A stretch of DNA of 64,000 nt from Piromyces finnis finn (Eukaryota; Fungi; Neocallimastigomycota). Positions within the stretch are counted from its first letter, which is position 1. Each line of letters starts with the position of its first letter. The position numbers were made by a program, and so were the translations under genes. Of this stretch, positions 1,021 to 35,467 are shown in pieces. The notes below the pieces were generated by a model that saw only the letters and a list, made by a program, of their open reading frames with translations, ran no database searches and was not told where the DNA came from. The DNA is taken from NCBI GenBank assembly GCA_002104945.1, contig MCFH01000032.1, positions 1-64,000 of the forward strand, in the 5' to 3' direction.

Positions 1021-1372
1021 AAATAAAATAAAATAAAATAAAATAAAATAAAATAAATAAAATAAAATAAAATAAATAAAATAAAATAAAATAAAATAAA
1101 ATAAAATAAAAATAAAATTAAAATAAAATAAAATAAAATAAAATAAAATAAAATAAATAAAATAAAATAAAATAAAATAAAATAAAATAAAATAAAATAA
1201 AATAAAATAAAAAAATAAAATAAAATAAAATAAAATAAAATAAAATAAAATAAAATAAAATAAAATAAATAAAATAAAATAAAAAAAATAAAATAAAAAA
1301 AAAATAAAATAAAATAAAAAAAATAAAATAAAATAAAATAAAATAAAAAAATAAAATAAAATAAAATAAAAA
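1021..1372. repeat. (AAAAT)n microsatellite
   Basis: Visible pentamer array; mirrored at 8745-9110. Confidence 0.97.
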
Positions 1373-1631
1373 TGTTTAATAAATTATTTTCATACCAAAA
1401 AGTGAAAAATTTTAAGCTTTTTGTTAATTGGCTTCCTTTAAATGTAAATCATTTAAATGTAAATTTTTTTATTTAAATGGTTTTTATTAATAAAATATTT
1501 TATGTATAATTTCACAAAAATATGTTTAATTGCATAAGTCACAATATAATAATAATTCTCTTGATTTTATAAGGTATATTAATTTTTTTTTCTACCACCA
1601 AATATTATTAAAGTAAAATATTAAAAATAAA

Positions 1632-1703
1632 TAGCAGCGGTATGTTTCGATCATACGACCTGTGGGTTATGAGCCCACCACGCTTCCACTGCGCTACGCT
1701 GCT
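1632..1703 (-). tRNA. Initiator tRNA-Met(CAT)
   Basis: AGCAGCG acceptor with A1:T72, anticodon loop CTCATAA, GATCGAAA T loop typical of eukaryotic initiator tRNA. Confidence 0.96.
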
Positions 1704-1768
1704 CCTTATTGCATTTGTATGTAAGAATTAATAATTATTTATTGAATAATTATTAATTCTTATTTAAT

Positions 1769-4117: not shown

Positions 4118-4730
4118 TGATACAATAACAATATATTAAAAAAATTTGGACACATGGAAAAAATTAAAAATTTTTTTTAAAATTTGAAAATTTGAAAATT
4201 TGAAAAAATTTATTTTTTAAATTTTTATTAAAAAATTTCAAAGTATAAAATTTCTAATATTTGAAATTATTAAATTTTTAAAATTATTAAAATTTTATTA
4301 TTAAAAATTTTATTTTAAATTTATTAACTATTTACAATAATTATATTAATTATTAATTTATAAAAATTAAATATTTTATAATTAGATAATAATTAATTAA
4401 AATTAAAAAATGTAATAATTAAAATTGTTCATGTATAAAAGAACAAAAAATTGACAAAAATTACGAAGCTTTAGCGTTAGTAATTTTTTAACCTAAAGTT
4501 AATAAAATTTATAAACTCCTATAAAACCTAAAACTTTAAAAATTTTAATATTTTTAATAACTTAATATATGCTGATATTAAGTTATTGCTAAATAAAAAT
4601 ATTATTTAAATTTCTTTATATAAATATTATTAGCTTTACGCCTTCGATAGGAAAAGCGTATTATATTTATTAATTAATATAACTAGTGTGCTTACCACAC
4701 TTTTCTTTAATAAAAAATCGCTTTTTGACA
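4118..4730. mobile_element. Solo LTR family C (left-arm copy)
   Basis: TGATACAATAAC...CGCTTTTTGACA; reverse complement of 5350-5965 and homologous to 28367-30690. Confidence 0.85.
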
Positions 4731-4734
4731 ATTT

Positions 4735-5345
4735 TGTAAGAAAATTTGTGGCCATAAGTTTGCCCACAAATATTTCAATTGAAACCATATATTCTGGTCA
4801 CCATTTATTGGCCAAATATATGTATAACCATATATTAATGGTTATTAATTAAATAGGAAGTTTATTTGCTTTACCCAATCAAGTGGTAAAGAAAATAAAC
4901 TAATATAGTTAAATAGTATAGTTAAAACTAACGTTAAATACTTTAGCGTTAGTATTAAAGTAATTTAGTAACTATAATAATAATTAATGTATTATAATTA
5001 TAATTAATAAATAAAAGATATAATTAAAATTAATTATTAAGTAATTATTTATATAATATTTATATATATTATTAATTTATTAATACTATAATTAATTATT
5101 ATTATAGTTACTAAATTACTTTAATACTAACGCTAAAGTATTTAACGTTAGTTTTAACTATACTATTTAACTATATTAGTTTATTTTCTTTACCACTTGA
5201 TTGGGTAAAGCAAATAAACTTCCTATTTAATTAATAACCATTAATATATGGTTATACATATATTTGGCCAATAAATGGTGACCAGAATATATGGTTTCAA
5301 TTGAAATATTTGTGGGCAAACTTATGGCCACAAATATTTCTTACA
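4735..5345. mobile_element. Two truncated head-to-head halves of LTR family A at the palindrome centre
   Basis: TGTAAGAAA end at 4735 and TTTCTTACA end at 5345; matches 31290-31554. Confidence 0.85.
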
Positions 5346-5349
5346 AAAT

Positions 5350-5965
5350 TGTCAAAAAGCGATTTTTTATTAAAGAAAAGTGTGGTAAGCACACTAGTTA
5401 TATTAATTAATAAATATAATACGCTTTCCTATCGAAGGCGTAAAGCTAATAATATTTATATAAAGAAATTTAAATAATATTTTTATTTTAGCAATAACTT
5501 AATATCAGCATATATTAAGTTATTAAAAATATTAAAATTTTTAAAGTTTTAGGTTTTATAGGAGTTTATAAATTTTATTAACTTTAGGTTAAAAAATTAC
5601 TAACGCTAAAGCTTCGTAATTTTTGTCAATTTTTGTTCTTTTTATACATGAACAATTTTAATTATTACATTTTTTAATTTTAATTAATTATTATCTAATT
5701 ATAAAATATTTAATTTTTATAAATTAATAATTAATATAATTATTGTAAATAGTTAATAAATTTAAAATAAAATTTTTAATAATAAAATTTTAATAATTTT
5801 AAAAATTTAATAATTTCAAATATTAGAAATTTTATACTTTGAAATTTTTTAATAAAAATTTAAAAAATAAATTTTTTCAAATTTTCAAATTTTCAAATTT
5901 TAAAAAAATTTTTAATTTTTTCCATGTGTCCAAATTTTTTAAATTTTATATATGTTATTGTATCA
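5350..5965. mobile_element. Solo LTR family C (uninterrupted reference copy)
   Basis: TGTCAAAAAGCG...GTTATTGTATCA; shows the empty site for the Rep insertion (AATAAAAATTTAAAAAATAAA at ~5851-5871). Confidence 0.85.
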
Positions 5966-7316
5966 GGGGTTTGGCGAATAGGTTGAATTATTTTATTATT
6001 AAATAAGGTTTGATAAAAATTTAGAAAAGACAATAATAGAAATTTATTTAAAAATTTTACAAGACTCTTTTATTAATAATTTAAGTTTAAAATTATATTT
6101 GATCTTTTATTAACATTGAAAAGTGGACTTTTTATAAGTCAGAATAATAAAAAGGTTTTTATAGAATTTGAAAATAATTCTCAATTGAAGCTTAACTAAT
6201 TATTTTTTCTTTAACTATTTATACTAAAGCTTCAATTGAGGCTTTACAATTATTTTAATTTTTTATTAATAATAATTACTAATAATTACTAATTACATAA
6301 AAATAATTAATAATAAAGATTATAAAATTAATATTACTTCGAGAAGGTGTTATAATTCTTTTACTAAACTAAACTATTTATTCTTCTAAATTTTTCTATT
6401 TATTACTAATAACTAATTTATTAATAATTAAGATTCTTCTACAAAAATTATTTTATTATTTAATATTAATTAAAGTTAATTATAACAAAAAAATTTTCTT
6501 AACGTAATGTAACGTATTGATATATTGTGACAAAATGTAATAATTATTATTATATGTATTATATAATAATAATTATTATCTTCAATTTAATAATAATTAG
6601 TATTATTAAACTGAGAAGTTAAAATAAAATTTTATACTTATCTTAATAAGAGTTTATTATAAGGAAGTATAATAAACAACACAAAACTTTTAATGTTAAT
6701 TAATTTAAAATATTTTATTAATATTGTTTTAATAAAGGTTATTTATTATAATAGTTCTTATAATAATAACTCTGGATTTTTAAGTGGTATCCCAGAGTTC
6801 TTTTATTTATAATTTTTTAATAATTTAAAGTTTAATAAAAAATTTCTAATCTTAACAAATAATCTTTTTAGGAAAAGACTCGAAGAAAAACCTAAAAAGA
6901 TATTCGATTGATAACTAATATATCAATCATCGTAATATTAAGTAAAACCGAATAAAATTCGGAAAAACCTTAATATCCGATTGTCCTAATATTTATTTAT
7001 ATCTTCTAGTTGTTTCTATAAGTTATTTCAAGATACGATACATAAATATAAAATACAAACGTAAAATAAAATACATAATGTTTCTTATAAAATGTAATAC
7101 AAAAATTATTAAATAATAGAATAAATGAATGTTTACTATTATTTTAGATAAATTACTAAATTAAATAAATAATTAATTAATATAATAATTAAATAAATTT
7201 TACATTTAGTAAATGAATAATTAATATTAATATAAATAACTGTTTATAGTAATTTAAATGAATGTATGCTAATAATTTAAATAATTAATTAATTTAATAA
7301 TTAAAAAAATAATTAA

Positions 7317-8347
7317 TGTCACGAATACTAGTGAAATTACAATTTCAAGATCACTTGGAATTGTGAAATCACTTATGAAAATTCAAAATCAACAAATATT
7401 TTATTTTCAAATAAATTATAAAATTTTATTAAGAAATATTTAAAAATTTAGAAAAGGTTAAAATATGACCTTAACCCTTAATAATTTTTATAATAAATAA
7501 CTTTAACCCTTATCGTTAAAATGGAATAAGAAAAAACACGCGTATCTCCTCAACGAATGACGATTTTTGAATAAAAATGTTTTGGTTATAATTAAGTTCG
7601 TTAGAAAGCCACGCTCGAGACAAACAACATATCTTAAAATCAGGTCAATATCTCTGCTGGTTCACGAGATATTCCAATTTAAAGATATTTTGTTAGCAAT
7701 GATTAATTGTTTATTCAGAGAATGATCACCCCTGATATATCAAACATAAATCATTCACTCAAAGTATAAAAAAATATTGTTTAATTAAATTAAAATTATT
7801 TTCCGGAACTAATTAACTTTATTTTATAATAATTATTTCAATAACATAATTTATAATCTTTGAATTAAAAGATTATAATTATTAATATTATATTCAATGA
7901 ATTATATTATAATTAAGAAATAATTAATATTATAAATATATAAACAATAGTTATTTTTAATAATTAGTAGTAAGTCTTAAGTTTAGCCTTAGTATTATAA
8001 AATATATTATGAATATAATCATGTACTAAAAAGTTATTTTAGTATTAAATGTAAAATTACAAATAGTATAAATAGTTTAGAATAGTTTTATGAATTAAAT
8101 CTTTGTAAAGATTATTATCTTATTAATACTTAATAAGTATTACTATTAAATAATCTTATTATTATATATATTCTTTAAATAAAATAAAAAGGAATTATTT
8201 TAACTATAATACATAATATAATTATTCATTTATAAATCAATTAAGATTATTTTAATAAAACATTTTTTTTCTAACCTAGTTATCTTTTAACCTTTTATTT
8301 AATTTAATATTTTAATATTAAATTATAAGTTTAGTAAAACTTTTACA
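7317..8347. mobile_element. Solo LTR family B (mirror of 1769-2785)
   Basis: TGTCACGAA...ACTTTTACA termini; ends 65 bp before tRNA-iMet. Confidence 0.9.
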
Positions 8348-8412
8348 ATTAAATAAGAATTAATAATTATTCAATAAATAATTATTAATTCTTACATACA
8401 AATGCAATAAGG

Positions 8413-8484
8413 AGCAGCGTAGCGCAGTGGAAGCGTGGTGGGCTCATAACCCACAGGTCGTATGATCGAAACATACCGCTGCTA
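8413..8484 (+). tRNA. Initiator tRNA-Met(CAT), mirror copy
   Basis: Exact reverse complement of 1632-1703. Confidence 0.96.
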
Positions 8485-8744
8485 TTTATTTTTAATATTT
8501 TACTTTAATAATATTTGGTGGTAGAAAAAAAAATTAATATACCTTATAAAATCAAGAGAATTATTATTATATTGTGACTTATGCAATTTAAACATATTTT
8601 TGTGAAATTATACATAAAATATTTTATTAATAAAAACCATTTAAATAAAAAAATTTACATTTAAATGATTTACATTTAAAGGAAGCCAATTAACAAAAAG
8701 CTTAAAATTTTTCACTTTTTGGTATGAAATAAATTTATTAAACA

Positions 8745-9110
8745 TTTTTATTTTATTTTATTTTATTTTATTTTATTTTATTTTATTTTATTTTATTTTA
8801 TTTTATTTTATTTTATTTTATTTTATTTTATTTATTTTATTTTATTTTATTTTATTTTATTTTATTTTATTTTATTTTATTTATTTTATTTTATTTTATT
8901 TTATTTTATTTTATTTTATTTTATTTTATTTTATTTTATTTTATTTTATTTTATTTTATTTTATTTTATTTTATTTTATTTTATTTTATTTTATTTTATT
9001 TTATTTTATTTTATTTTTATTTTATTTTATTTTATTTTATTTTATTTTATTTTATTTTTATTTTATTTTATTTTTATTTTATTTTATTTTATTTTATTTT
9101 ATTTTTATTT
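8745..9110. repeat. (ATTTT)n microsatellite
   Basis: Pentamer array, mirror of 1021-1372. Confidence 0.97.
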
Positions 9111-9359
9111 GATTATATATTGTATTAATAAATTTATTAATAAATAAAAGTATTATTATAAAACATAATTTATATTAAATTAATAAGTAGGGTTACTTAT
9201 ATAAATAGTAAATATATTAATAAATTTAGAAATATTTTTAGTTAAAATTAAAATTATTAAATAAAAGTATAAAGAGTAAAATATTATGTTAATTTTAAAT
9301 ATTATCCTTGTGTAATTTCGAAAATTATATCAAAATATATTCATTAAAATAATCATCAT

Positions 9360-9432
9360 TACCCAAACCCGGGTTCGAACCGGAGACCTTTTCCGTGTAA
9401 AGGAAACGTGATAACCACTACACTATTTGGAT
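9360..9432 (-). tRNA. tRNA-Val(TAC), mirror copy
   Basis: Exact reverse complement of 700-772. Confidence 0.95.
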
Positions 9433-9497
9433 ATTGATAAATTTCATGGTACACCACATTCAGAAAAATGCAATAAATCCATATATTTGGTAAATGA

Positions 9498-10530
9498 TGT
9501 CACGAATACTAGTGAAATTACAATTTCAAGATCACTTGGAATTGTGAAATCACTTATGAAAATTCAAAATCAACAAATATTTTATTTTCAAATAAATTAT
9601 AAAATTTTATTAAGAAATATTTAAAAATTTAGAAAAGGTTAAAATATGACCTTAACCCTTAATAATTTTTATAATAAATAACTTTAACCCTTATCGTTAA
9701 AATGGAATAAGAAAAAACACGCGTATCTCCTCAACGAATGACGATTTTTGAATAAAAATGTTTTGGTTATAATTAAGTTCGTTAGAAAGCCACGCTCGAG
9801 ACAAACAACATATCTTAAAATCAGGTCAATATCTCTGCTGGTTCACGAGATATTCCAATTTAAAGATATTTTGTTAGCAATGATTAATTGTTTATTCAGA
9901 GAATGATCACCCCTGATATATCAAACATAAATCATTCACTCAAAGTATAAAAAATTATTGTTTAATTAAATTAAAATTATTTTCCGGAACTAATTAACTT
10001 TATTTTATAATAATTATTTCAATAACATAATTTATAATCTTTGAACTAGAGGATTATAATTATTAATATTATATTCAATGAATTATATTATAATTAAGAA
10101 ATAATTAATATTATGAATATTATAAACAATAGTTATTTTTTAATAATTAGGAATAAGTCTTAAGTTTAGTTTAAGTATTATAAAATATATTATGAATATA
10201 ATCATGTATTGAAAAGTTATTTTATTATTAAATGTAAAATTACAAATAGTATAAATAGTTTAGAATAGTTTTATGAATTAAATCTTTGTAAAGATTATTA
10301 TCTTATTAATACTTAATAAGTATTACTATTAAATAATCTTATTATTATATATATTCTTTAAATAAAATAAAAAGGAATTATTTTAACTATAATACATAAT
10401 ATAATTATTCATTTATAAATCAATTAAGATTATTTTAATAAAACATTTTTTTTCTAACCTAGTTATCTTTTAACCTTTTATTTAATTTAATATTTTAATA
10501 TTAAATTATAAGTTTAGTAAAACTTTTACA
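9498..10530. mobile_element. Solo LTR family B
   Basis: TGTCACGAA...ACTTTTACA, 5-bp TSD AATGA (9493-9497 / 10531-10535). Confidence 0.9.
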
Positions 10531-11190
10531 AATGAAATAACCCTTATAATATATATGGATTTAAATATTTTTATTTGAGAAATTTATATAACGATAGTAA
10601 TAATAAGAATAGTAAATTAAATTAAATTAAATTAAAAACTTATAAATAATTTATTAAAGTATAATAAACTTTTTATAATTTAATATAAGGATGATAAAAA
10701 TATAATTATATAAGGAAGAGAAAGACGCGTATATATATATAAAAAGGGAAGAGTTTTTAGTTTTAGTTAGTTTTTAGTTAGTTTATATTAATTATATTAT
10801 AAATAAAATAAAGATAAGGTGATAATAATAGAAGAATAAATAATATTATTGTTAGATTTAGTGAAGGAATTAATAATAATATTAGTTTATTTTCTAAGAT
10901 TATACCTATTTTTAAAAACAAATAATAATATAAAATAATAATAAATAATACTTATAAATAATAAAGCTTGTAATAAAAATAATAAAACTTGTAATAAAAA
11001 TAATAAAATAATAAATAAAATAATAAAATAATATATAATAAAAAATATTCATCTAGAATATAAATTTGTTATTTATAACTGTTGTAGTGTCCCAAACAAT
11101 AAAGAAAAAGGTACTTATAATAAAATTCTGTACCATTCATGTGTAAGAAATAATTGTAAAATATTGCATTAGTTAAATAATGTATTTAAT

Positions 11191-12187
11191 TGTGAAGATA
11201 TTAAGTGGATTTAAAACAAATTCAGATAATATCTATAATTAATTAAACATAATAATTATAATTAAATAATTCCAACAATTATTTTAAAACACCTTTAAAA
11301 GTCACCTTTTAAATTTTGATTCAGTGAAAGGGTTATGATTTCAAAAATTTAATATCAATACACTATAACCCTTAACCAAAAATAAACAAATACGAAACTA
11401 GGTATAACTCGCCAAAAATGATCGCTACGGCTGTAAGTGCTACGGTTGTGAAACCAAGTTTATTAGAAAGCTTAAGAGAAAAGCTATATTTTGGTACGAT
11501 CGCGGTCCTTCTAACTGGTCATTTAAGAAAGATATGGTCATTTAAAGATTTTAATAAGTAAATTAAAATCAATATGATATCAAGTATGGATCATAGACAT
11601 TTCTTATGACTTGACGAAAATTAAAAATATATCAATAGAAACTTTAATTATATTAATTTAATTAATGATAGTGACTGTTACTAAAAATAGAACTAAACCA
11701 TTTAGGTGTAACAGTTAACATTTATAAATTAAATAATTTTAATTATTATAAAATAGGTTAATGGATCAAGTGTTTAAATGATTAATCATATGTTTATTTT
11801 ATTTTATGCCATGACAAAACAAACAAACAAACAAACAAACAATCTTATTATATTATTAATATATTACATGTAATACTTTATTTTTATCAATTTAATAATC
11901 TGAACAAAGAATATAAAATAGAATGATTTGAATTCGATTTTAATCCTTTGTAAAGATTATAGTTATAATCTTAATTATATAGTTATTAAATATATTATCA
12001 TTTATATTATTATTACTAAATAAATAAAATTTTATAAAAAGTTATTCTAAAAAATAAATATTAATTTTTCATTTGGAAGTTTAAAGTGTTATTTTATATT
12101 TAAATTTAATTTCTTAAAAAAAACATATTTACTATATAATTAATAACATTCTGACCTGGCCGCATAACCAAATCCCAAAACTTAACA
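11191..12187. mobile_element. LTR family G copy
   Basis: TGTGAAGAT...CTTAACA termini; inverted homolog of 18976-19971; no matching TSD. Confidence 0.75.
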
Positions 12188-16440: not shown

Positions 16441-18222
16441 ATATTTTCAAAAACCTTAGAAGAACATCACCAACATATACGTGAAGTTCTTTCAAAACTA
16501 TTAGAAAATAATTTATACGCTAAGCTTCCTAAATGTGAATTCGACAAACCACAAGTTGAATTCTTAGGGTATGTTATTTCAGGTTCAGGAATTGCTACCG
16601 ACCCAAAAAAGATAGAATCAATCAAAAATTGGCCTACTCCTATCACAGTTAAGGATGTACAAAGATTTTTAGGTCTTTGTAACTACTATAGACGCTTTGT
16701 AATGAATTTTGCAAACTTGGCTAAACCCCTCCACAACTTAACAAAAAAGAATGCAAAGTTTAAGTGGTCTACAGAATGTGAATCCTCATTTAATATTTTA
16801 AAAACTCGTTTAACTTCCGCACCTATTTTATCACATCCTGATCCTCAAAAACAATATATTTTAGAATGTGATGCAAGTAATGTTGCTATTGGTTCTATAC
16901 TTTCTCAATATGATTCAGAAAATCGTTTACATCCTGTTGCTTACTATTCCAGAAGTCTCAGTAGTTCTGAAGTTAACTATTCTATAACAGATAAAGAATT
17001 ATTAGCCATTAAGGATTCTTTCTCTACTTGGAGGCACCTTCTTCTTGGTGCTAAGCATAAAATAAAAGTCTACACTGATCATAGAAACTTACTTTATACT
17101 CTTGGAGGAAAAGTAGGTAATCAAAGACAACATCGCTGGCACCTTTTCTTTCAAGAATACGATTTTGAACTTATATACAGACAAGGTCGTAAGAATGGTA
17201 AACCTGATAGTCTATCTCGCAGACCTGACTACATGGACAAGACATATGAAGTAAAGCCAGAATTTATTTTAGACTCAAAAAATGTAAAACTAATACCAAG
17301 CTTCATAGGTATTATGAGTAACTTCTTGGAACAAGTTATTCAATACTTAAAGGACGACGAAACTGCTAAGGATATTATGCTATATTTCAGCCCATATAAT
17401 GACCAAAAGGCTTATAAACCATTTAGGAAAATGAACAAGTTTGAATTAAAAAATAATCTTATTCTATATAATAATTTAGTTTATATTCCTGAAAAACTAC
17501 GTTTAGATGTTCTTATGAAATATCATGAACAACCCTCTGCTGGACATCATGGTGTAAAAAGAACTTTAGAATTGATAACTCGAAATTTTTGGTGGCCTAA
17601 AATTAAGGATGATGTCACTAAATTTGTTAATTCTTGTGAAACATGCGCAAGAAATAAAGTAACTAGACATCGTAAGTATGGAAAATTGCAACCTTTAGAT
17701 ACTCCAGAACGTCCATGGAAATCCATAGAAATTGACTTTCTTTGTGGCCTTCCTGAGTTTAAAGGGTACACCGTTATTATAGTAGTGGTTGACTGCTTTT
17801 CCAAAATGATTCACCTAGTTCCGTTTAAACAAATTCCAAATGCAGCACAAACTGCAAAAGCTTTTTTGAATAATGTATATCGTTTACATGGTCTCCCTTA
17901 TTATTTATATACTGATAGAGGCTCACAATTCACAAGTGATGTTTGGCTCGAAATTTTGGATTTATTATATATTCATCCAAGAATAGCTACTACTGACCAC
18001 CATGAAACTGTTGGACAGGTTGAGAGGTCAAATTCTTTTATTAAACAGTATCTTAGATGTTATTCCAAGTCTTTCTATCATGACGACTGGGTTGACTGGC
18101 TTCCACTTGCAGAATTCGCTTATAATAATGCTGTTAATGAATCAACCAAAGAAACACAATTCTTCATTAATTATGGTTTTCATCAATCTTTACAAAGATT
18201 TAATTCCATAAAACTATTCTAA
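16426..18222 (+). pseudogene. Gypsy pol fragment: RT C-half, RNase H, integrase core (closely related to element F)
   Basis: MDDILIFS, ECDASN, DHRNL, HHCC zinc finger, EIDFL / TDRGSQF / GQVERSN. 3' truncated where a B-like LTR begins. Confidence 0.9.
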
Positions 18223-18970
18223 ACTATTTATACTATTTGTAATTTTACATTTAGTAATAAAATAACTTTTAATACATGATTAAATTCATAATATATTTTA
18301 TAATACTAAAGTTAAACTTAAGGCTTAATCTTAATTATTAAGTTTAAGTATTGTTAATAATATTTATAATATTAATTATTATTTAATTCATTGAATATAA
18401 TATTAATAATTATAATCTTTTGATTCAAAGATTATAAGATATGTTATTGAAATAATAATTATAAAATAAAGTTAATTAATTCCGGAAAATAATTTTAATT
18501 TAATTAAAACAATAATTTATATCCTTTTGGGTGAATGATTTATGTTCAATACATCAGGGGTGATCATTCTCTGAATAAACAATTAATCATTACTAACAAA
18601 ATATCTTTAAATTGGAATATCTCGTGAACCAGCAGAGATATTGACCTGATTTTAAGATATGTTGCTCATCTCGAGCGTGGCTTTCTAACGAGCCCATAAT
18701 TTCCAAAACACAATTATCCAAAATCGCTATTCGTTAAGGAGATACGGGTGTTTTTCCTTATTTAATTTTGACGATAAGGGTTAAAGTTATTTTTTATAAA
18801 ATTATTAAGGATTAAGGTCATATCTTAACCTTTTCTAAATTTCTTAAATATTTCTTAATATAATTTTATAATTTATTTGGAAATTAAATATTGTTGATTT
18901 TGAAATTTTATAAGTAATTTCACAATTTCAAGTGATCTTGAAATTGTAGATTTCACTAGTATTCGTGACA
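18205..18970. mobile_element. Diverged, left-truncated LTR of family B
   Basis: Homologous to 22085-22858 with many substitutions; ends TTCGTGACA at 18970. Confidence 0.8.
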
Positions 18971-18975
18971 TTTTA

Positions 18976-21297: not shown

Positions 21298-21755
21298 AAT
21301 TTCTGTAAAAGGTGTTTTTATAATATTAGTTAATAAGTTATTAATATTTAGCTAATTAAGTTAGTTATTACCTCTCTATACGAGTTAATAACTAAATAAA
21401 GTTTTATAAAAAATAATAAAAGAAATAAAATAAATATTATAACACTAAAGTAATTACAAAAAAAAACGTATAAAGATTTTATGAAATAATGTTTACTTAA
21501 ATAATTCTATATTAATTATATCTTTTATTTATTAATTATAATTATATACATTAATTATTATTATAGTTACTAATTTACTTTAATACTAACGCTAAAGTAT
21601 TTTACGTTAGTTTCAACTATACTATTTAACTATATTAGTTTATTTTCTTTACCACTTGATTGGGTAAAGTAAATAAACTTCCTATTTAATTAATAACCAT
21701 TAATATATGGTTATACATATATCTGGCCAATAAATGGTGACCAGAATATATGGTT

Positions 21756-22858
21756 TGTAAAAGTTTTACTAAACTTATAATTTAATATTAAAATATTAAA
21801 TTAAATAAAAGGTTAAAAGATAACTAGGTTAGAAAAAAAAAATGTTTTATTAAAATAATCTTAATTGATTTATAAATGAATAATTAAATTATATATTATG
21901 GTTAAAATAATTTCTTTTATTTTATTTAATGATATATTGCTAAAATATATAATAATAAGATTATTTAGTAGTAATACTCATTAAGTATTAATTATTATTA
22001 ATAGTTAATAATTTATAGTTAATAATTTAATAATTTATGGTTAATAATTTTTGGTTAATAATCTTTACAAAGATTTTAATTTCATAACTATTCTAAACTA
22101 TTTATACTATTTGTAATTTTACATTTAATAATAAAATAACTTTTCAATACATGATTATATTCATAATATATTTTATAATACTTAAACTAAACTTAAGACT
22201 TATTCCTAATTATTAAAAAATAACTATTGTTTATAATATTCATAATATTAATTATTTCTTAATTATAATATAATTCATTGAATATAATATTAATAATTAT
22301 AATCCTCTAGTTCAAAGATTATAAATTATGTTATTGAAATAATTATTATAAAATAAAGTTAATTAGTTCCGGAAAATAATTTTAATTTAATTAAACAATA
22401 ATTTTTTATACTTTGAGTGAATGATTTATGTTTGATATATCAGGGGTGATCATTCTCTGAATAAACAATTAATCATTGCTAACAAAATATCTTTAAATTG
22501 GAATATCTCGTGAACCAGCAGAGATATTGACCTGATTTTAAGATATGTTGTTTGTCTCGAGCGTGGCTTTCTAACGAACTTAATTATAACCAAAACATTT
22601 TTATTCAAAAATCGTCATTCGTTGAGGAGATACGCGTGTTTTTTCTTATTCCATTTTAACGATAAGGGTTAAAGTTATTTATTATAAAAATTATTAAGGG
22701 TTAAGGTCATATTTTAACCTTTTCTAAATTTTTAAATATTTCTTAATAAAATTTTATAATTTATTTGAAAATAAAATATTTGTTGATTTTGAATTTTCAT
22801 AAGTGATTTCACAATTCCAAGTGATCTTGAAATTGTAATTTCACTAGTATTCGTGACA
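21756..22858. mobile_element. Solo LTR family B inserted in the 3' LTR of A
   Basis: TG...CA termini, 5-bp TSD TGGTT (21751-21755 / 22859-22863); empty site visible at 5291 and 31501. Confidence 0.93.
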
Positions 22859-22933
22859 TGGTTTCAATTGAAATATTTGTGGGCAAACTTATGGCCACAA
22901 ATATTTCTTACAATGCCCCCCTAAGGAGAAAAC

Positions 22934-25900
22934 CTAGGTGGGGTTTTGGACACTAACCATGAATTCCTGGTAGCATTTATCTTGAAATTCCTTGAGTAGC
23001 TTATCATAGTGGGAGTTCTTGTCAATGATATCAGCATCAACCCACTCTTGCCTAAAGTCACTAAAGGTAGCTAAGTATTGGTAGTTATCCTTCTTTCTTC
23101 TAGCATTCATGATTTTGATGATTTTCTGGTAGCCCACTGGTGCAGGTGTTAGTTCTTCAGGTTTGTTATGGTAGGGTTCAAGTTCACTGATATGAAACAC
23201 TGGGTAGACGTTGGGGAAAGGTGACTTGCTGATATCCAACCGGTAGTTAAGCTTGCTTTCATCAATTCCAATAACCTTGAAGGGACCGTACTTTCTTGCT
23301 TGTAGCTTGTAGAAGGGAAGAGGGTTGTAATTTTCTGGTTTTCTTAACCACACCAAATCCATGAGTCTAATTTTAGGGTAGTTAAGTTCTCTTCTATGGT
23401 CCAAGTGGTCTAAGAACCGTGTTCTTGATATGTCCAGCATGTGCTTTAAGTTACCTAAGTTGTGAGCGAAGCTATCTAATACAGGAGCTTCGCCAAGTGA
23501 GTGGACAAGTTCTGAATCTTGAGGGTTCATATGTACCTGGTAGTTATACAAGGCTAGGAATGGGGACTGTTTAGTAGAACTGTGCACTGCATTATTATAA
23601 CAGAACTCAGCTAAGTACAAGTACTTCAACCATTCGTCGTCATCAAAGGTCTTCACAAAGCATCTAAGGTACATACTTACGTAGGAGTTGTTACGTTCTA
23701 CCTGACCAACTGTTTCATGATGGCCAGTAGTAGCAAGGTTTACTTCTACACCAAAGAACCCCATAATGTCCTTCCACAACTTACTAGTGAACTGGACACC
23801 ACGATCCGTAGTAACCGATTTGGGACAACCATGTAACTTGAATACATGTTGTAAGTATGCTAATGCTGTTTCTTTAGCAGTAGGCATACTCCTAAATCCC
23901 ACTAAGTGTATCATTTTGGTTAACTTATCGCTACAAACCATGATACAACCTCTTCTAGTGACTTCTGGGGGTTCTGATGGACTACTACCTGGTTTTCTGC
24001 GTTCCTTAATAGGTAGGTCCGTCAGGAAGTCAATTTCTACTTCTTGCCAAGGTAAGTCTGCAACTTTTACCCTAGCAGCGCTACCATACGGCTTGTGTCT
24101 GTTGTCCTTTTGGGTACAACATATGGTACAAGCTTTAATATAACCCGCAATGTCATCCTTCATTTTTGGCCAGTAATAGTTTCTGACTATCAGGTCGTAA
24201 GTCTTATCCTTTCCTAAGTGACCCGCTGTTTCACTATCATGGTTAAGTTTTATGATTGTTTCCCTTAACACCTTTGGTACATATGTACGTTCTGGTGCAT
24301 CCTTTCTAACAATCAACCCATTAACCATCAACCACTTCTTTTTGATGAGCTTGTGGCCTCTTTTTGCGTCAAGACCATCTCTAATTTCCCTAGCAAGCTC
24401 ATCCGTGTTGTAAGCTTGTTTCAATTCTCCCACAAAGCTTACTTCTAACACCGCATAGCACTCTTCTTCCACGGGTGGAAATTCTTTTACCTGTTCAGGT
24501 CGAAGGAGGCTAGCTTTTTCCATCTCCAGTTGTACCTGTTCTGGAGATACCATTCTTGATAGGATATCGGCTCTACCATTCATTTTTCCTGGCCGATATA
24601 TTATTTCGAAGTTGTATGCAGCAAACAGCTCTTGCCATCTTGCCTGTCTTGCTGTCAACAACTGTGGTTTTGTGGCGAACAGGAGATTCCTATGGTCACT
24701 ATATACTAGGACCTTATGTTTCGCACCCATCAACAGGTGTCGCCACTCGATGAAAGCATTCCTAATAGCCAACAACTCCTTTTCCGTGATGGAGTAGTTG
24801 ATTTCTGCTTTCGTAAGCTTCTTGGAATAGTAATACACAGGGTGTAGTTCATTGTCATCGCCTAGTTGTGATAGTACACCACCCACCGCGTAGTTACTAG
24901 CGTCGCACTCCACTATGAACTGACGGTCATGGTCAGGATATGCTAATACTGGTGGAGACAACAGCATTTCTTTTAACTTCTCGAACGCCTGGATGCGTTC
25001 TTCATTCCACAGGAACTGTACTTTTTTGGACGTCATAGCATATAACGGCCTTGCTATCTTAGAGAAGTCCTTTATAAACTTCCTATAATAGTTGCAGAAT
25101 CCGAGGAATGACTGTAGTTCTTTGAGGTTGGTTGGTTGTGGCCAACTTGCTACAGCTTTTAACTTCTCTGGGTCGGTTTTAATACCATATTTTCCAACTA
25201 CATGACCCAGGAATGCAAGTTCTTCCTTGTGGAACTCACACTTCGCTAATTTAGCTACTAGACGATTATCTATTAGCTTTTGTAGGACTCTTTTTACATG
25301 CCCTACATGCTCTTCAAGTGACTTGGAGTAGATGATGATATCATCCAAGTACACTTGACAGCAGTCATTGATTTCCTCTGCCAGCACCGTATTAATGAAC
25401 CCTTGGAACGTGGCAGGAGCATTAGTCAACCCAAATGGCATCACTAGATATTCATAATGCCCAAACTTGGTTGAGAATGCCGTCTTGTATTCGTCACCTT
25501 CACGAATACGCACGAGGTTGTAGGCAGACTTCAAATCCAACTTGGAGAAGATAGTCGCGCCTTTCATAGCCTCGAACACTTGACTGATGAGTGGTAAGGG
25601 GAAGGAGTTACGCACTGTTACCTTATTAAGACGCCTATAATCAGTACATAATCGTCTTTCACCACTCTTTTTGGGCACGAATAACACAGGATAACCTGCA
25701 GGACTCTCTGACTTCCTGATGAAGCCCTTTGCCAGGTTTTCCTCTATATATTCCTTCAATGCTTTTTCCTCTTCTGGATTGAAGGGATATATAGGCCCTT
25801 TATGGAGACTAGCCTCCGGCTCCAGGTCGATCTTACAGTCGTAAGGACGGTGTTCTGGTAGCTGGTTAGCTATCTCTTCATTAAATGCTTCTTTGAAATT

Positions 25901-26701
25901 GTGGTAGTACTTCTCCACGATTTCTTCAGGTGTGGGTTGATTTTCGTTTAAGTTTTCTTCCTGTACCAACCCTACGTAAATGTGATTTTTCTCTAAGTTC
26001 GACTCTTGTACCAACCCTACTGAAACACAAGTTTTCTCTAAGTTGGATTCAAATGTCAACCCTCCGGAATCACATTTTTTCTCTAAGTCAACACTCTGTA
26101 CCAACCCTACTGAAACGGGATTTTTCTCTAAGTTGGAACTCGATGCCAACCCTCCGGAACTTCCGTTTCTGGTTTCCTTTGTAGCCTTGTGGCTACCATT
26201 ACCCACGATTTCGGCTTCTATGTTTTCCGCAGTTACAGTTACCAGAGGCCTTCTTGCTTTTGCATTAGTAACTGTAGTTATGGGACTTAATTGAGTACAG
26301 TAGTAGATATCGCCACCATTTACACCATAACTGTTGGTATGTCCTTTATCCTTATCATTATCTACCACGAAGTACCTCACTTGTGCATCTTTATCATAAC
26401 CTCTGTAGATAAAGTGCTCATCCATGAAGCCCAGTCCCACAATGATCATCTCCGGCATGTTGTCGGATAGGTGACAACTTGTGTTGAAGCAGTATGGTTT
26501 AGCTTCTTGTTCGCCAGATGGAGTTAACCATAACTTCAACTGCAAGTCATCTGAGAACTGCTTTAACTCGATATCACCATTCACAGTTCTGAATATGGCT
26601 GGTTTGTCCACTACTTTTAACCCGAGCTTCTTTGCTAAATTTGGGTGGATGAGGTTTGTAGTGGAACCAGTATCATACAAGACTTCTACCCTTTTTATAT
26701 C
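22934..26701 (-). CDS. Element A pol: protease, RT, RNase H, integrase, degenerate chromodomain
   Basis: Open frame with VLYDTGSTTN, YLDD, ECDASN, DHRNL, HHCC, EIDFL / TDRGVQF / GQVERNN and C-terminal YQYLATF..EWVDA. Confidence 0.95.
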   Translation of the reverse strand, partial: DIKRVEVLYDTGSTTNLIHPNLAKKLGLKVVDKPAIFRTVNGDIELKQFSDDLQLKLWLTPSGEQEAKPYCFNTSCHLSDNMPEMIIVGLGFMDEHFIYRGYDKDAQVRYFVVDNDKDKGHTNSYGVNGGDIYYCTQLSPITTVTNAKARRPLVTVTAENIEAEIVGNGSHKATKETRNGSSGGLASSSNLEKNPVSVGLVQSVDLEKKCDSGGLTFESNLEKTCVSVGLVQESNLEKNHIYVGLVQEENLNENQPTPEEIVEKYYHNFKEAFNEEIANQLPEHRPYDCKIDLEPEASLHKGPIYPFNPEEEKALKEYIEENLAKGFIRKSESPAGYPVLFVPKKSGERRLCTDYRRLNKVTVRNSFPLPLISQVFEAMKGATIFSKLDLKSAYNLVRIREGDEYKTAFSTKFGHYEYLVMPFGLTNAPATFQGFINTVLAEEINDCCQVYLDDIIIYSKSLEEHVGHVKRVLQKLIDNRLVAKLAKCEFHKEELAFLGHVVGKYGIKTDPEKLKAVASWPQPTNLKELQSFLGFCNYYRKFIKDFSKIARPLYAMTSKKVQFLWNEERIQAFEKLKEMLLSPPVLAYPDHDRQFIVECDASNYAVGGVLSQLGDDNELHPVYYYSKKLTKAEINYSITEKELLAIRNAFIEWRHLLMGAKHKVLVYSDHRNLLFATKPQLLTARQARWQELFAAYNFEIIYRPGKMNGRADILSRMVSPEQVQLEMEKASLLRPEQVKEFPPVEEECYAVLEVSFVGELKQAYNTDELAREIRDGLDAKRGHKLIKKKWLMVNGLIVRKDAPERTYVPKVLRETIIKLNHDSETAGHLGKDKTYDLIVRNYYWPKMKDDIAGYIKACTICCTQKDNRHKPYGSAARVKVADLPWQEVEIDFLTDLPIKERRKPGSSPSEPPEVTRRGCIMVCSDKLTKMIHLVGFRSMPTAKETALAYLQHVFKLHGCPKSVTTDRGVQFTSKLWKDIMGFFGVEVNLATTGHHETVGQVERNNSYVSMYLRCFVKTFDDDEWLKYLYLAEFCYNNAVHSSTKQSPFLALYNYQVHMNPQDSELVHSLGEAPVLDSFAHNLGNLKHMLDISRTRFLDHLDHRRELNYPKIRLMDLVWLRKPENYNPLPFYKLQARKYGPFKVIGIDESKLNYRLDISKSPFPNVYPVFHISELEPYHNKPEELTPAPVGYQKIIKIMNARRKKDNYQYLATFSDFRQEWVDADIIDKNSHYDKLLKEFQDKCYQEFMVSVQNPT

Positions 26702-28881
26702 TCAAGGGTTGCTTCTTGCATTTATTTCAGCTACTAGTTGGTTCTGACTGTAGTAACTGTTATTGACCGTCGTTTGACTTGCCATAGCCTTAGGTAATGG
26801 GTTATTTCCCATACTAGAAGGTCCTTGCCTTGGTTGGAAGCTAGAACTTCTTCTAAAGCTTGACTTATTTAAGGATTCACGACGTTCTTTAGTACCGTTA
26901 TTGTTTTTTGCGTAAGCCTGAGTGTTGGTCTGCTCAACTTTAGGCTTATTATTTGGCTTGTTGTTCTTCTGCTTCAACTCAGCCCATCTAGATGGTCTAC
27001 ATGGGTCTGTGATGTCCAACAATGCCATAATAGTGGTCTGGCGGTCTCTTTTGTCGTACTTTTCTATGGTTTCATTACGGAAGACTGCTTGGTGATCATC
27101 GCACTTTAACAAGACTTCACTTAATGTTTCCAGCGTACGTTCCTGTTCAGGGATATCATAGAACGCTTCCCGAACAGAAGGCCTGACCTGTTGTATTAAC
27201 ACCTGTCTCCTAACATTTTCAGGGAGCCCAAGCGTTTCCGTCAATTCATTGAACTCTTCCAAGTAATCGTATGCTTTTCCCCACTCATGTGTGAGCTTAA
27301 GCAACTTTGACTTGCAGAGTTCATGGGGAGACTCTGGTGGAAACTTATCTTGAAGGTGGAGGAATAGTCTTTCAGCATCAGGATTCCTACGCTGCAACAT
27401 CCTCTCTCTAAGTCTATACCATCTCAATACTTTCCCACCTAGATGATCTTCAATGAAGCTAACCTTTGCCTTTTCGTCGTTACCATAGTCATATGGGTAA
27501 CGTTTGAAATGACGTAAGCATTTCTCTTGAAAACCCTCTAAGTCTATCCCATTATTATCAAACATAGGCACTTTTTCTTCATACCTATGTACTCGCCAGT
27601 CGAACATCTTCACGTCCCCATCCTCGGAGTATTCCGTAGGGTTGGTGCTACTACTAGTTCCAGCACCATGAGGATTACCCATACCACCGGTTTGATAGGA
27701 TGTTCTTTCATGAGCTCTGGCTTCAGCTCTTCTGTTCATGGCTTCGACTTTAGCCTCGAACAATTTTTCTCTTTCTTCTAGAGCGTTTCGTTACTCCCTC
27801 AATCTGGCCATCTCTTCTTCAAGCTCTTTTTTATAAGAGACAAAGGCACTAGATTGGCGGTACAACGTTTCTTGGTTGTTTAGCACTTGCTGGTGGTCTT
27901 GTAACCTTTCCTCATGTTCTGCAGTAAAGGCATTTTCCACAGCATGCAGCTCTTCCAAGCTAACTTGGCTAGCTGACTCATTTGCTTCCAACCTTTGATC
28001 CACTTCAACAAATTTTTGCTGAAGAGCATCGTTTATCTCGCTCTTGTAAACCTCAATACCCCGAAGTTGTTCTTCCATAGCACCCAGACGGTTTCCCATA
28101 CTAGCAAACTGGCTAGATATTTCCGAAACCCTTCTATTAAGAAGAACTTCAATGTGTTGCATTGGGTTTACCTCACTATTATTAGTAAAAAAGAAAGAAG
28201 GATCAACAGGGGCGGGCATAGAATCCCCCTGTTGAACCTGTAAATTCTGATTAGATTCGACCTCAGTGCTTTCGAGAAGCACCGGGGTTCGAACCCGTGA
28301 CATTCCCTCTACACCATCCATGCCATCCGCGCTCGCCGCGTCAGGACAGGTCCCGTCCCTTACGAATGTCAAAAAGCGATTTTTTATTAAAGAAAAGTGT
28401 GGTAAGCACACTAGTTATATTAATTAATAAATATAATACGCTTTCCTATTGAAGGCGTAAAGCTAATAATATTTATATAAAGAAATTTAAATAATATTTT
28501 TATTTTAGCAATAACTTAATATCAGCATATATTAAGTTATTAAAAATATTAAAATTTTTAAAGTTTTAGGTTTTATAGGAGTTTATAAATTTTATTAACT
28601 TTAAGTTAAAAAATTACTAACGCTAAAGCTTCGTAATTTTTGTCAATTTTTGTTCTTTTTATACATGAACAATTTTAATTATTACATTTTTTAATTTTAA
28701 TTAATTATTATCTAATTATAAAATATTTAATTTTTATAAATTAATAATTAATATAATTATTGTAAATAGTTAATAAATTTAAATTAAAATTTTTAATAAT
28801 AAAATTTTAATAATTTTAAAAAATTTAATAATTTCAAATATTAGAAATTTTATACTTTGAAATTTTTTAATAAAAATTTAA

Positions 28882-30321
28882 ATTCTCAATAAAGAAAATA
28901 CTGCAATTAAAGGATGGAAACTCACTACACTTAAAAATAATACAAGTGATCGTTTTCATTTTAGTCCTTGTTATAAGCATATTAGTGCTAATATTAATTA
29001 TTGCACTAAAGAAGATAAAGATGGCTTTTTTGAATATTTAAAAGAAGGTTTTAATCACCCAAATGATAAAGGATTTACCAAAGTTGAAGTTGAAAATAGT
29101 AGATACGATCATGCTTTAGAATTGGCTCGCAACGATAAAATGGAACAAATTGAATCTACAATTTTAGTTCGTCATTATAAAAATTTAATGGATATTAAAA
29201 ATAATAATGTAAATATGGACCGTATGTATTTACAAAATCCAGAAACTGGAGAAGATTACCATCACAATCACTTTCTCTTTCTTTATGGTGCTACTGGTGT
29301 TGGTAAAAGTAAATTCCTAAATGAATTCTTAGATAATTTAAATTATTTTTACAAAAAATTTTGTGTAGGACGTCCACAATTTGATTCAAAATATGAATTT
29401 AAACAATATTTTAAATCTAAGGATAAATGGTGGGATCATTATAATTATGAAGATGTTATCATTATTGATGAAGTTAATGCTAGTAAGACCGAATTCCTTG
29501 GAGACCACTTTAAGGAATGGTTCGATCAAACACCATTTAAAGCCAATGTTAAAGGAAGTATGTTAAACCAAATTAGACCAAAATTTATATTAATGGCATC
29601 CAACTTTACCTTTGATCAATGCTTTCCAAAGACTGAAGATAACATTCCTTTAAGAAGAAAAATACAAGTTCATGAAATGAAGGAAGGTGATAATTTCAGA
29701 TGGCCAAATTGGAATATGCTTGGTAGAGAATGGCTTTCAGCAGTTAAAGTTAAAATCCAAGCTGAAAATGATAGAATTAATAGATTAGAAGAAGAATTTA
29801 AAAATGTTAATTTCGATAAAGATTTTAAAGAAGACTTTTTACCAGATACACTTGAAAAAATCTGGCAAAAGGAATATGGAACTAAGTATACACCAACAGG
29901 ATGGCTTACAGATTTAATGGAACAAGATACTCCTTGCCCAAGTGCCAAAATTGACATCCCAAGTGATTATTCTCTTTCAATTACTCCTGATATTCAAAAT
30001 GCATCTTTTATTACCCAAAGTGATAATATCAAATTAATAGATACACCATCATTCAATTCTACAACAGTTAATGATGGATCTACTGATAGATTTAATGAAT
30101 TGATTGATGATTTGAAAAGTAGAATAGATATAAATGTAGAAAATAGTTATAAAAATTTAGAAAATGAACAAGAAATTAGTCATGATAATAATGTTAAAAT
30201 ATTAAATGAATTAAATAATAATAGTCCTTTTGATTTTGAAAGTACTAGTCAAAATAATATTAATAAACAAGTTACCTTTGAAAAATTTAATGTAGTTAAT
30301 AAACAAAATTATTTAAATTAA
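28882..30321 (+). CDS. rep: 5'-truncated CRESS-type Rep (HUH motif III plus SF3 helicase), 479 open codons, no native start
   Basis: Frame is open from the junction. NYCTKED (YxxK, 28999-29010), Walker A GATGVGKS, KWWDHY, Walker B IIIDE, motif C ILMASN, Arg finger LRRKI. Confidence 0.88.
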   Translation: MLNKENTAIKGWKLTTLKNNTSDRFHFSPCYKHISANINYCTKEDKDGFFEYLKEGFNHPNDKGFTKVEVENSRYDHALELARNDKMEQIESTILVRHYKNLMDIKNNNVNMDRMYLQNPETGEDYHHNHFLFLYGATGVGKSKFLNEFLDNLNYFYKKFCVGRPQFDSKYEFKQYFKSKDKWWDHYNYEDVIIIDEVNASKTEFLGDHFKEWFDQTPFKANVKGSMLNQIRPKFILMASNFTFDQCFPKTEDNIPLRRKIQVHEMKEGDNFRWPNWNMLGREWLSAVKVKIQAENDRINRLEEEFKNVNFDKDFKEDFLPDTLEKIWQKEYGTKYTPTGWLTDLMEQDTPCPSAKIDIPSDYSLSITPDIQNASFITQSDNIKLIDTPSFNSTTVNDGSTDRFNELIDDLKSRIDINVENSYKNLENEQEISHDNNVKILNELNNNSPFDFESTSQNNINKQVTFEKFNVVNKQNYLN

Positions 30322-30581
30322 ATGTATAATAAATAAATAATTAATAAAATAATAAAAATATTATTATTTTTTGACTACCCTACAAAAAATATCCCAATCA
30401 CAAAAAAATTAGTGTTTTTTAAAATAAACTTTTTAAAGTTGGTCATATGATCTAAAAAATTTAATTTTTCTATATTCTTTATATTAATTACGGTACCCGG
30501 TACCCATAATATATGTAATTAAATTAATTGAATACCATTCTATAATATATTAATTTATATTGATTTTGGGTACTCATTTTG
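28883..30581 (+). mobile_element. 1699-bp insertion of CRESS-DNA-virus-like Rep sequence
   Basis: Absent from other C copies; flanked by direct repeat ATTTAAA (28876-28882 / 30582-30588). Confidence 0.85.
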
Positions 30582-31048
30582 ATTTAAAAAATAAATTTTT
30601 TCAAATTTTCAAATTTTCAAATTTTAAAAAAATTTTTAATTTTTTCCATGTGTCCAAATTTTTTAAATTTTTATATATGTTATTGTGACAACGAATGATG
30701 TTTTTGTGTCCAATTTATGGACACCCCGAGGGTTAGGCGACTTACCTGTATTTTTCATTTCTAACTCGAAAATAAATTCTTTCAATAAATTAAAGAATTT
30801 ATTATATAAAATATGATTATAATGAATTTTAAAATTTAAAATAATGAATTTTTTATGACTAAACTATTAGAAAATAATTATTTTTAATAATAAATTTACT
30901 TCTTTTAAATATAATATTTGAATATTATATAAAATATTGTAAATAATTATTATTAAACAATAATTTAAATAAAATAAAATATGTTTTTTAAGAACTTTTA
31001 ATAAAACTAACCTAATTAAAACTAAGCTAACGTAAGAACTAACTATAA

Positions 31049-33681: not shown

Positions 33682-35467
33682 TGTCACAATAACATATATA
33701 AAAATTTAAAAAATTTGGACACATGGAAAAAATTATTTTTTAAATTTTTATTAAAAAATTTCAAAGTATAAAATTTCTAATATTTGAAATTATTAAATTT
33801 TTTAAAATTATTAAAATTTTATTATTAAAAATTTTAATTTAAATTTATTAACTATTTACAATAATTATATTAATTATTAATTTATAAAAATTAAATATTT
33901 TATAATTAGATAATAATTAATTAAAATTAAAAAATGTAATAATTAAAATTGTTCATGTATAAAAAGAACAAAAATTGACAAAAATTACGAAGCTTTAGCG
34001 TTAGTAATTTTTTAACTTAAAGTTAATAAAATTTATAAACTCCTATAAAACCTAAAACTTTAAAAATTTTAATATTTTTAATAACTTAATATATGCTGAT
34101 ATTAAGTTATTGCTAAAATAAAAATATTATTTAATTTTCTTTATATAAATATTATTAGCTTTACGCCTTCAATAGGAAAGCGTATTATATTTGTTAATTA
34201 ATATATGTAAAGTGGGCTAGGGTTGATATGTAACTTGGTCAGAATGTTTTGATATAATACAACTTAATCTAAAATAAAATATTAAACTTGTTTATTATTA
34301 AACCTTTTCTTTAAAACTTATTAAAGAATTTTAAATAATACTAATTTAAAAATTAATAGGTTTTTATATTTAAAGTAAAAATTTTAATATAATTTAATTA
34401 TGAAATTTGTTTATTAATTATTTATTTATTAAGATAATATTTATTAAGTTATATTATAATTAATAATTAATAATTAATAATCTTACAAAGAATTTCAAAA
34501 TTGATTTTAATTCTTTGTTTAAATACTTTTTTCTTACATATAATAAAATTACATTGATATTAATATTGATATTAATAATAAAGAAAAAAATAAAATAATT
34601 TTAAATTAAAATATTAATAATTGATATTGATATTAATAATATGAACTCATATGATAGATCTTAAGATTAATCTTTTAAATTACTTTTAAAATAAAAGTAT
34701 TGTTTTAACCATTTTAAATTGTAAATATTTAATATTATAAATTGAGAATAACAATTATTGATACTAATTATATATATTCTCATGATCAATTAATTAATAA
34801 TTATAACTAATGATTTTTGATCTAAAGGCTTTTTTGGTTTGATTATGATTAAGGTTATTAATCAAAAATTATTTGAAAAATTATTAATTAATTTTTATAA
34901 TTGATTAGGTTTGTAATCAAGAATATTTATTATCTAACCTTATTTAATAATAATGGAGAGTTTTTAAATTGAATTATTTATAGTATGTTGGATGACTTGA
35001 ATAATGACTTTAATTATATAAATTAATATTGATCATTTTAATATATATTATTATATATTTATTGGAACTAATTAATTCTTTAAATAACTATATCTCAAGA
35101 ACTAGTGGTCTAAATTAGCTGAAAATTTGTGAGAATATAGATCTCAACTAGTACTTTCTAATAAAGTTGATTTGAATTCTCTAGAAAATGAAAATAGGAC
35201 GCGAGATTCAGAAGTTATCCCTAGTTTCGTATAATGAATTTTCTTCTCAAGGGTTAATTTATTGAAAATTAAATTTTTGTGATCCTTAACCCTTTCCCAT
35301 ATTAGATTTTTCAAAGTGATCTTTTAATTATTTTAAAAGTATTTTATAATTTTTGAAATATAAATTTGATTTTTTAATTATTTATTTAAATATTTAGTAT
35401 ATTTATTAATCGTCTTCTATTCTTGACATTACCACACTTTTCTTTAATAAAAAATCGCTTTTTGACA
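33682..35467. mobile_element. LTR family C copy interrupted by a G-related LTR-like sequence (34206-35428)
   Basis: C termini TGTCACAAT and GCTTTTTGACA. Insert has TG..CA ends and shares GGTCAGAATG and CCTAGTTTCGTA blocks with G. No clean TSDs. Confidence 0.65.

Follow-up and report, generated by a model that had tools for sequence, protein, structure and literature searches.

A nested insertion in the genome of Piromyces finnis

Piromyces finnis is an anaerobic gut fungus whose genome assembly is GCA_002104945.1 (PMC6690862). We analysed the first 64,000 nucleotides of its contig MCFH01000032.1, hereafter the window, which has a GC content of 22% and consists mostly of nested retroelements. 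Within it lies an insert of 1699 bp (28883-30581) that carries a truncated gene for a Rep protein of the type found in circular Rep-encoding single-stranded DNA (CRESS) viruses, with the heptamer ATTTAAA at each border (28876-28882 and 30582-30588). The insert interrupts a solo long terminal repeat (LTR), here named LTR C, which itself interrupts the gag gene of a Ty3/gypsy retroelement, here named element A. An earlier reading of the bare letters (the original prediction) had proposed this three-level nesting with 1699 bp between the heptamers, and both the coordinates and a self-BLAST of the window bear it out. The features of the locus are as follows.

22934..30758, minus strand: coding region of Ty3/gypsy element A (41-44% GC), in which gag precedes pol and is broken once by LTR C
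28367..30690, plus strand: solo LTR C, which has short inverted ends and ACGAA flanks and measures about 618 bp if the insert is not counted
28876..28882, no strand: left target-site duplication ATTTAAA, present as a single copy at the empty paralogous sites
28882..30321, plus strand: Rep-derived open frame, 479 codons and a stop, its 5' end cut at the element boundary
28883..30581, plus strand: inserted virus-derived segment, 1699 bp, 25% GC, without terminal inverted repeats or an A/T tail
29278..29607, plus strand: superfamily 3 (SF3) helicase core, PF00910, frame residues 133-242 (Pfam E 6.9e-11), conserved in Walker A, Walker B, motif C and the arginine finger region
29782..30318, plus strand: C-terminal 179 residues of the Rep frame, a low-complexity tail without a family match
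30322..30581, plus strand: 3' non-coding part of the insert, 260 bp, 18% GC, without a significant hairpin or a match elsewhere
30582..30588, no strand: right target-site duplication ATTTAAA
5858..5864, plus strand: empty site in the paralogous LTR C copy at 5350-5965
4216..4222, minus strand: empty site in a second paralogous LTR C copy
33739..33745, minus strand: empty site in the closest paralogous LTR C copy, which is 99.6% identical over 467 bp

Self-BLAST revealed that the left flank of the insert (28359-28882) matches 5340-5864 with 98.7% identity, and that the right flank (30582-30686) matches 5858-5961 with 99% identity. The two matches are contiguous in the paralogue (5340-5961) and share exactly 7 bp, 5858-5864. 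The empty site that had been expected near 5860 is thus confirmed, yet it is not the only one: three paralogous LTR C copies in the window hold ATTTAAA once each, those at 4216-4222 and 33739-33745 reading in the reverse orientation. No further base can be added to the duplication on either side. In addition, the left ATTTAAA bears a stop codon in the Rep reading frame and is therefore not part of the donor rep, so that the host supplied both copies and the duplication is a real one. The same stop codon rules out that the heptamer was a microhomology that the donor supplied at both ends. The segment is genuinely inserted in a young solo LTR, with 7 bp of target duplicated, and host DNA borders it on both sides within the 605,914-bp contig.

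The interrupted repeat ends in the short inverted sequences TGTCA...TGACA and is flanked by its own 5-bp duplication, ACGAA, at 28362-28366 and 30691-30695, which identifies it as a solo LTR. It cuts the minus-strand gag after codon 22, as had been estimated from the letters. When the two gag pieces were translated separately, the upstream one was found to comprise 22 codons, counted from the ATG up to the duplication, and the downstream one resumes in unchanged phase. The pol region of element A encodes protease, reverse transcriptase (RT), RNase H, integrase and a Tf2-type SH3 domain.

The nesting gives an order of age in which the insert is younger than solo LTR C and LTR C is younger than element A. 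The occupied LTR C differs by 0.4% from its nearest empty paralogue and by 1.3-2.1% from the others. Substitutions that create a stop codon in the Rep frame make up 5.3% of those possible, and the chance that the frame stays open is 0.74, 0.47, 0.22 and 0.001 at 0.4, 1, 2 and 10% divergence, respectively. The open frame is therefore compatible with an insert that is young and neutral, and gives no evidence of selection. The original prediction had called the insert recent, partly for its freedom from stops; the nesting and the 99.6% LTR identity uphold this age, but an open frame is to be expected by chance in so young an insert (P = 0.47-0.74).

The truncated Rep and its relatives

The Rep frame is open from 28882, at the left junction, for 479 codons as predicted, and the stop that precedes it is the one inside the left ATTTAAA. 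It contains neither stops nor frameshifts; an open run of this length has a chance of about 5e-21 given the local composition, and stops number 27 and 103 in the remaining two forward frames. The frame is host-like in composition, with 15% GC at third codon positions (GC3), and the annotators placed a gene model of 165 residues (P0001) at the locus. The only Pfam match of the frame is PF00910 (E 6.9e-11, residues 133-242). PF02407, the nuclease of circovirus/nanovirus-type Reps, gave no match in the frame. In alignments of 11 and 63 sequences, Tyr40 and Lys43 of nuclease motif III occupy columns that are invariant or nearly so across the family. The SF3 helicase residues are likewise conserved, namely Gly136, Gly139, Lys142 and Ser143 of Walker A, the acidic pair of Walker B, Ser240/Asn241 and Arg259/Arg260. 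Across the part of the family that it covers, the frame retains every invariant or nearly invariant residue except the His and Gln of motif II, whose columns have no counterpart in either alignment. The nearly invariant Thr of motif I also has no counterpart, being upstream of the frame start. The original prediction, which kept motif III and all SF3 motifs and denied motifs I and II, therefore stands on each of these points.

The frame start corresponds to residue ~55-115, mostly 60-85, of the Reps of the ten best full-length relatives. Judged from these alignments, rep is broken in one way, by 5' truncation at the element boundary, with a motif II region that is additionally unrecognisable. 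Long, dissimilar C-terminal tails such as the one in this frame are also found in the Rep relatives.

A full HMMER scan with the Rep frame against 1.84 billion representatives (E <= 0.001) yielded 2352 related proteins, of which only one is close, namely the 165-residue model annotated at this locus itself. The next-best relatives are 420-935 residues long and share 31-37% identity with the frame, aligned to its residues 10-296. Pfam tests of ten relatives found PF02407 together with PF00910 in eight and PF00910 alone in two; PF02407 was matched in relatives among P0002-P0012, and in P0016 and P0160. When the 479-residue frame and the 165-residue gene model served as queries in word-indexed protein searches, only the locus itself came back. 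By sequence, the solved structures weakly matched were porcine circovirus 2 Rep helicase entries.

An AlphaFold model built from the 63-sequence alignment has a mean pLDDT of 91, with 93-98 in the helicase, 71-83 in the nuclease remnant and less than 50 in the first ten residues. In a structure search of BFVD, the named entries among the top 50 matches were all Reps of circular single-stranded DNA viruses, including kirkovirus and cyclovirus. The best matches in the PDB were the vientovirus FB Rep hexamer and the porcine circovirus 2 Rep, followed by more distant SF3 helicases. Pfam, the sequence relatives and the structure together show that the protein is a CRESS-type Rep. Similar to the Cressdnaviricota Reps of vientovirus FB and porcine circovirus 2, it has the HUH motif III, a linker and an SF3 helicase with the full set of motifs. 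It differs from them in that motif I is absent, motif II is unrecognisable, the low-complexity tail is long and the gene is integrated rather than circular. Its identity is <=36% to any sampled Rep and ~20-23% to named Reps.

Helitrons are also eukaryotic genomic elements that encode a HUH-type Rep and a helicase. In Helitrons, however, the HUH Rep is fused to an SF1 (Pif1-like) helicase and insertion makes no target duplication. Membership of this group was rejected, as the P. finnis helicase is SF3 and a 7-bp duplication is present.

The best relatives with full Reps sit on AT-rich metagenome contigs of 2-6 kb, the nearest free ones being circles of 4-6 kb with an unusually high AT content. 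The contig of one of them, P0006, was assembled as the same sequence from three samples in different rotations. Two of these assemblies close on themselves into a 4809-bp circle, their terminal overlaps being 141 and 55 nt; the third has just a 29-nt overlap and is ~80 bp short. On the strand opposite rep, the circle carries an open reading frame (ORF) of 344 residues whose start is rich in arginine and which matches Circo_capsid weakly, below the Pfam cut-off, and upstream of rep it has an origin-like hairpin with 23-nt arms, followed by a 16-mer repeated twice. A capsid-like ORF akin to the one on the circle is also carried by the contig of the best relative, P0002. In IMG/VR, a profile scan found at least 355 viral contigs with a relative, and 74 of the 80 contigs fetched for more distant relatives are closed circles. 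The contigs of the closest relatives have 23-30% GC, near that of the AT-rich fungal genomes; the 80 more distant ones have 35-55% (median 44%), all above the contigs of the closest relatives. These data show that the relatives are small circular molecules that encode a capsid, and circular contigs with a capsid gene had been named in advance as what would support a virus. Compared with such free genomes, which have a circle and a hairpin, the window holds a linear integrated fragment without a significant hairpin or a capsid gene.

Two further observations were made among the metagenome contigs. Those of P0002, P0156 and P0009 carry a long Rep only (421-793 residues, some with cysteine-rich tails) and end in a shared k-1-mer in inverted orientation (30, 141 and 30 nt, respectively). 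Such ends are what a unique region between the arms of an inverted repeat would give; the molecules may be circles with an inverted repeat, linear or of another form. In addition, an 11.9-kb contig of JGI metagenome 3300020079 (1-11887) encodes two Reps that are 60% identical to an Anaeromyces robustus Rep, a capsid-like ORF and four further ORFs of 436-470 residues without an assigned identity. It is either much larger than the usual CRESS-type virus or a piece of a host genome.

Rep-like genes are present in the genomes of four anaerobic fungi: P. finnis, A. robustus, Piromyces sp. E2 and Pecoramyces. The A. robustus Reps ORX76419.1 and ORX63278.1, on contigs MCFG01000299 and MCFG01000661, are members of the Rep family and are 94% identical to each other on core columns. 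On A. robustus contig MCFG01000299.1 (6313-8933), a minus-strand capsid-like ORF is followed by an origin-like hairpin (7762-7802) and a plus-strand Rep gene. The capsid-like ORF of 330 residues is 47% identical over its full length to that of the 4809-bp circle (E 2e-97), and the loop of the hairpin, which lies between the capsid-like ORF and the Rep, resembles that of the circle. The set has 29% GC against 16% in its flanks. By its gene content, this locus is a nearly full CRESS-type virus gene set.

A second Rep copy, on MCFG01000661.1, has 94% DNA identity to the MCFG01000299 Rep and begins inside the hairpin loop. It lies between remains of a gypsy-type protease and RT and is bracketed by a direct repeat of 176 bp (5488-5663 and 8026-8201); beyond it, at 8844-9500, is a third Rep piece, which is more diverged. 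The border of this copy falls within a 12-nt imperfect similarity in the hairpin loop, which no more than hints at a link to the origin nick site. At least one break is present in each of the two similar copies, and MULE/FLYWCH transposase genes are found near both loci. Compared with the P. finnis insert, the A. robustus loci MCFG01000299 and MCFG01000661 belong to a common Rep lineage and likewise lie amid retroelement and transposon remains, with 28% identity of the P. finnis Rep on core columns. They differ in that they retain the N-terminal nuclease motifs, in that one retains a capsid-like gene and a hairpin, and in their flanks, as one has the 176-bp direct repeat.

The other two Rep-like gene models are OUM70685.1 of Piromyces sp. 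E2 and one in Pecoramyces ruminantium. The former is spliced, lies at 6001-7964 of KZ150748.1 and encodes 557 residues that are Rep-like from the N-terminus; chromodomain and pol remains are found in its neighbourhood. Identity to the nearest metagenome relative is 62% for A. robustus, 65% for Pecoramyces and 36% at most for P. finnis. Since each fungal Rep has its own nearest metagenome relative, the sequences speak for several independent integrations from a diverse clade.

Origin of the insert

The extent and the ends of the insert bear on its origin. Neither a second insert copy nor another Rep piece was found in the window, and tblastn with the capsid-like proteins of three relatives gave no match there. 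Protein collections of 15 billion proteins contained no other gene model of more than 50% identity, and scans of the JGI metagenomes and IMG/VR contained no close relative of the Rep protein. The 3'-terminal 14-mer of the insert is unique in the window, and exact scans with a 26-mer and a 20-mer from the 3' end found no match. No further copy sharing a terminus was thus found in the window, the protein collections, the JGI metagenomes or IMG/VR, the whole P. finnis assembly being outside the search. The two ends of the insert align at a score of 14 against a shuffle mean of 17.3, and hence form no terminal inverted repeats. No poly(A) or A-rich tail was found, the longest run of A or T within 40 nt of either end being 2 nt. 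A candidate origin hairpin in the 3' non-coding part was rejected, because its fold is no better than that of shuffled sequences (z = -1.5). Insertion by an integrase was also rejected, as the LTR family here makes duplications of 5 bp.

We propose that the segment is probably a recent endogenous viral element (EVE), a sub-genomic piece of a CRESS-type virus captured in the nuclear genome of P. finnis. An endogenised virus fragment was the first of three origins offered by the original prediction, and it is favoured by the identity of the Rep, by the capsid-bearing circles and by the A. robustus locus. The captured piece would comprise roughly the 3' five-sixths of rep together with 260 bp downstream. 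A chromosomal break with 7-nt staggered ends may have been filled in and joined to a fragment of viral DNA by end joining. Capture of DNA at a staggered break is the most economical and most likely route; a tail-less reverse-transcription route and capture as filler at a transposon excision site are possible.

Another proposed origin was a retroposed mRNA, in which a viral or EVE rep transcript was copied at a nicked target by a non-LTR reverse transcriptase. Similar to processed retrocopies of this kind, the insert is truncated at its 5' end and has a short target duplication at an A/T-rich site, all typical of target-primed reverse transcription, and the region is crowded with retroelements. 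It lacks the poly(A) tail of such copies at either end, however, and it extends 260 bp beyond the stop codon, and no non-LTR reverse transcriptase was seen in the window. We consider this origin unlikely. More doubtful still is the remaining proposal, a Rep-bearing mobile element, of which the insert would be a 5'-truncated member moved by a Rep/SF3 protein or carried by another transposon. A target-site duplication is present as such an element would leave, A. robustus has several Rep-like copies, two of them 94% identical, near MULE/FLYWCH transposase genes, and some long-Rep metagenome contigs bear rep only and have inverted-repeat ends. The insert itself lacks terminal inverted repeats, neither a second copy nor a shared end turned up in anything searched, the nuclease motifs required for HUH-type movement are missing, and the relatives include capsid-encoding circles. 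The transposon proposal is accordingly not borne out.

The insert might instead be a secondary copy of an older, defective genomic Rep EVE of P. finnis, a piece of which served as filler in break repair. An unrecognisable motif II in a young insert and a sequence unusually far from all sampled relatives would fit such a source. The protein collections, however, hold no other annotated Rep-like gene model of P. finnis above 50% identity, and the helicase motifs and the 479-codon frame are intact, although an old neutral copy would be free of stops with P = 0.001 at 10% divergence. We regard this source as very improbable. Least credible is an assembly artefact or a contaminant read joined into the contig. 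The insert is a single copy from a long-read assembly of a repeat-rich genome, but in a chimera, exactly 7 bp of an LTR would not be repeated before the LTR resumes in register, and the composition of the insert is host-like (GC3 15%).

Several points weigh against capture of a viral DNA fragment. Motif II is unrecognisable even though its position falls within the fragment; decay hardly explains this loss in so young an insert, and the donor may already have been defective. The Rep frame is an outlier, with 28-36% identity to every relative against 35-63% among the relatives, and it has no sampled exogenous counterpart; an older genomic source for the insert is conceivable. Within P. finnis, the single-copy evidence covers the window and annotated gene models. 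A 7-bp duplication is also unusual for simple end joining.

As two of the three nuclease motifs are lost and neither an origin hairpin nor a capsid gene is present, the segment is predicted to be replication-dead, unable to start rolling-circle replication or to move by itself. At most, a helicase-only protein might be made from an internal start codon, possibly by read-out from the LTR; LTR C appears to have the same sense as the Rep frame, to judge from a primer-binding-like sequence after two other copies. Such a protein could make the truncated Rep a virus-derived defence gene, if the LTR-driven helicase joined the Rep hexamers of related viruses and blocked them. The intact 479-codon frame, the full helicase motifs, the gene model P0001 and the apparent same-sense LTR are the only hints in this direction, and a helicase-only protein would keep the parts for oligomerisation and ATPase activity. 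We consider a defence role a long shot.

Rep fossils of circular single-stranded DNA viruses are known in many eukaryotes. The P. finnis element is ordinary in kind, and what matters more widely is the link to anaerobic gut fungi as hosts, fungi for which we know of no established DNA viruses. Together with its relatives in the genomes of three further anaerobic fungi, the P. finnis insert suggests that an unclassified, AT-rich group of gut viruses has its hosts among these fungi. The very young P. finnis insert suggests that a related virus circulated recently. With this link, the hosts of one orphan group of gut CRESS viruses become testable from sequence data alone. In addition, the clean 7-bp duplication and the empty sites give a rare, well-resolved integration junction of a DNA virus.

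Rep-derived EVEs have been used to assign hosts to gut CRESS viruses in Entamoeba, Giardia and other protists (PMC7493932, PMC9615429), and integrations of rep and capsid protein genes in oomycetes are cited in PMC13499601. The P. finnis insert resembles the protist EVEs in being a chromosomal rep fragment with circular metagenome relatives, and the logic of host inference is the same. It differs in its host, an anaerobic gut fungus, and in combining a clean 7-bp duplication with empty sites in one window. A literature search that did not cover the 2021 survey of Rep integrations in eukaryotes found no paper linking anaerobic gut fungi to CRESS-type Rep integrations. Transcriptome mining has listed a 'gemycircularvirus' contig for Pecoramyces ruminantium (PMC9501391), which a review tabulates as single-stranded DNA (PMC10224137).

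Other features of the window

Several further features were observed in the window. The part of element A at 22934-28400 has 41-44% GC in a background of 12-30%, and the two other gypsy-type pol genes of the window have 24-33%. Two LTR C copies stand head to head (4122-4740 on the minus strand and 5350-5965 on the plus strand) around a palindromic centre of ~600 bp, with a matching primer-binding-like sequence outward of each. A long tandem array at 58573-59482, with copies ~90% alike, has an open frame of 291 codons without a Pfam match. A repeat of ~1.05 kb occurs in at least five copies (1760-2792, 7310-8356, 9491-10540, 18185-18972 and 21755-22859), one of which is inserted in the putative far LTR of element A.

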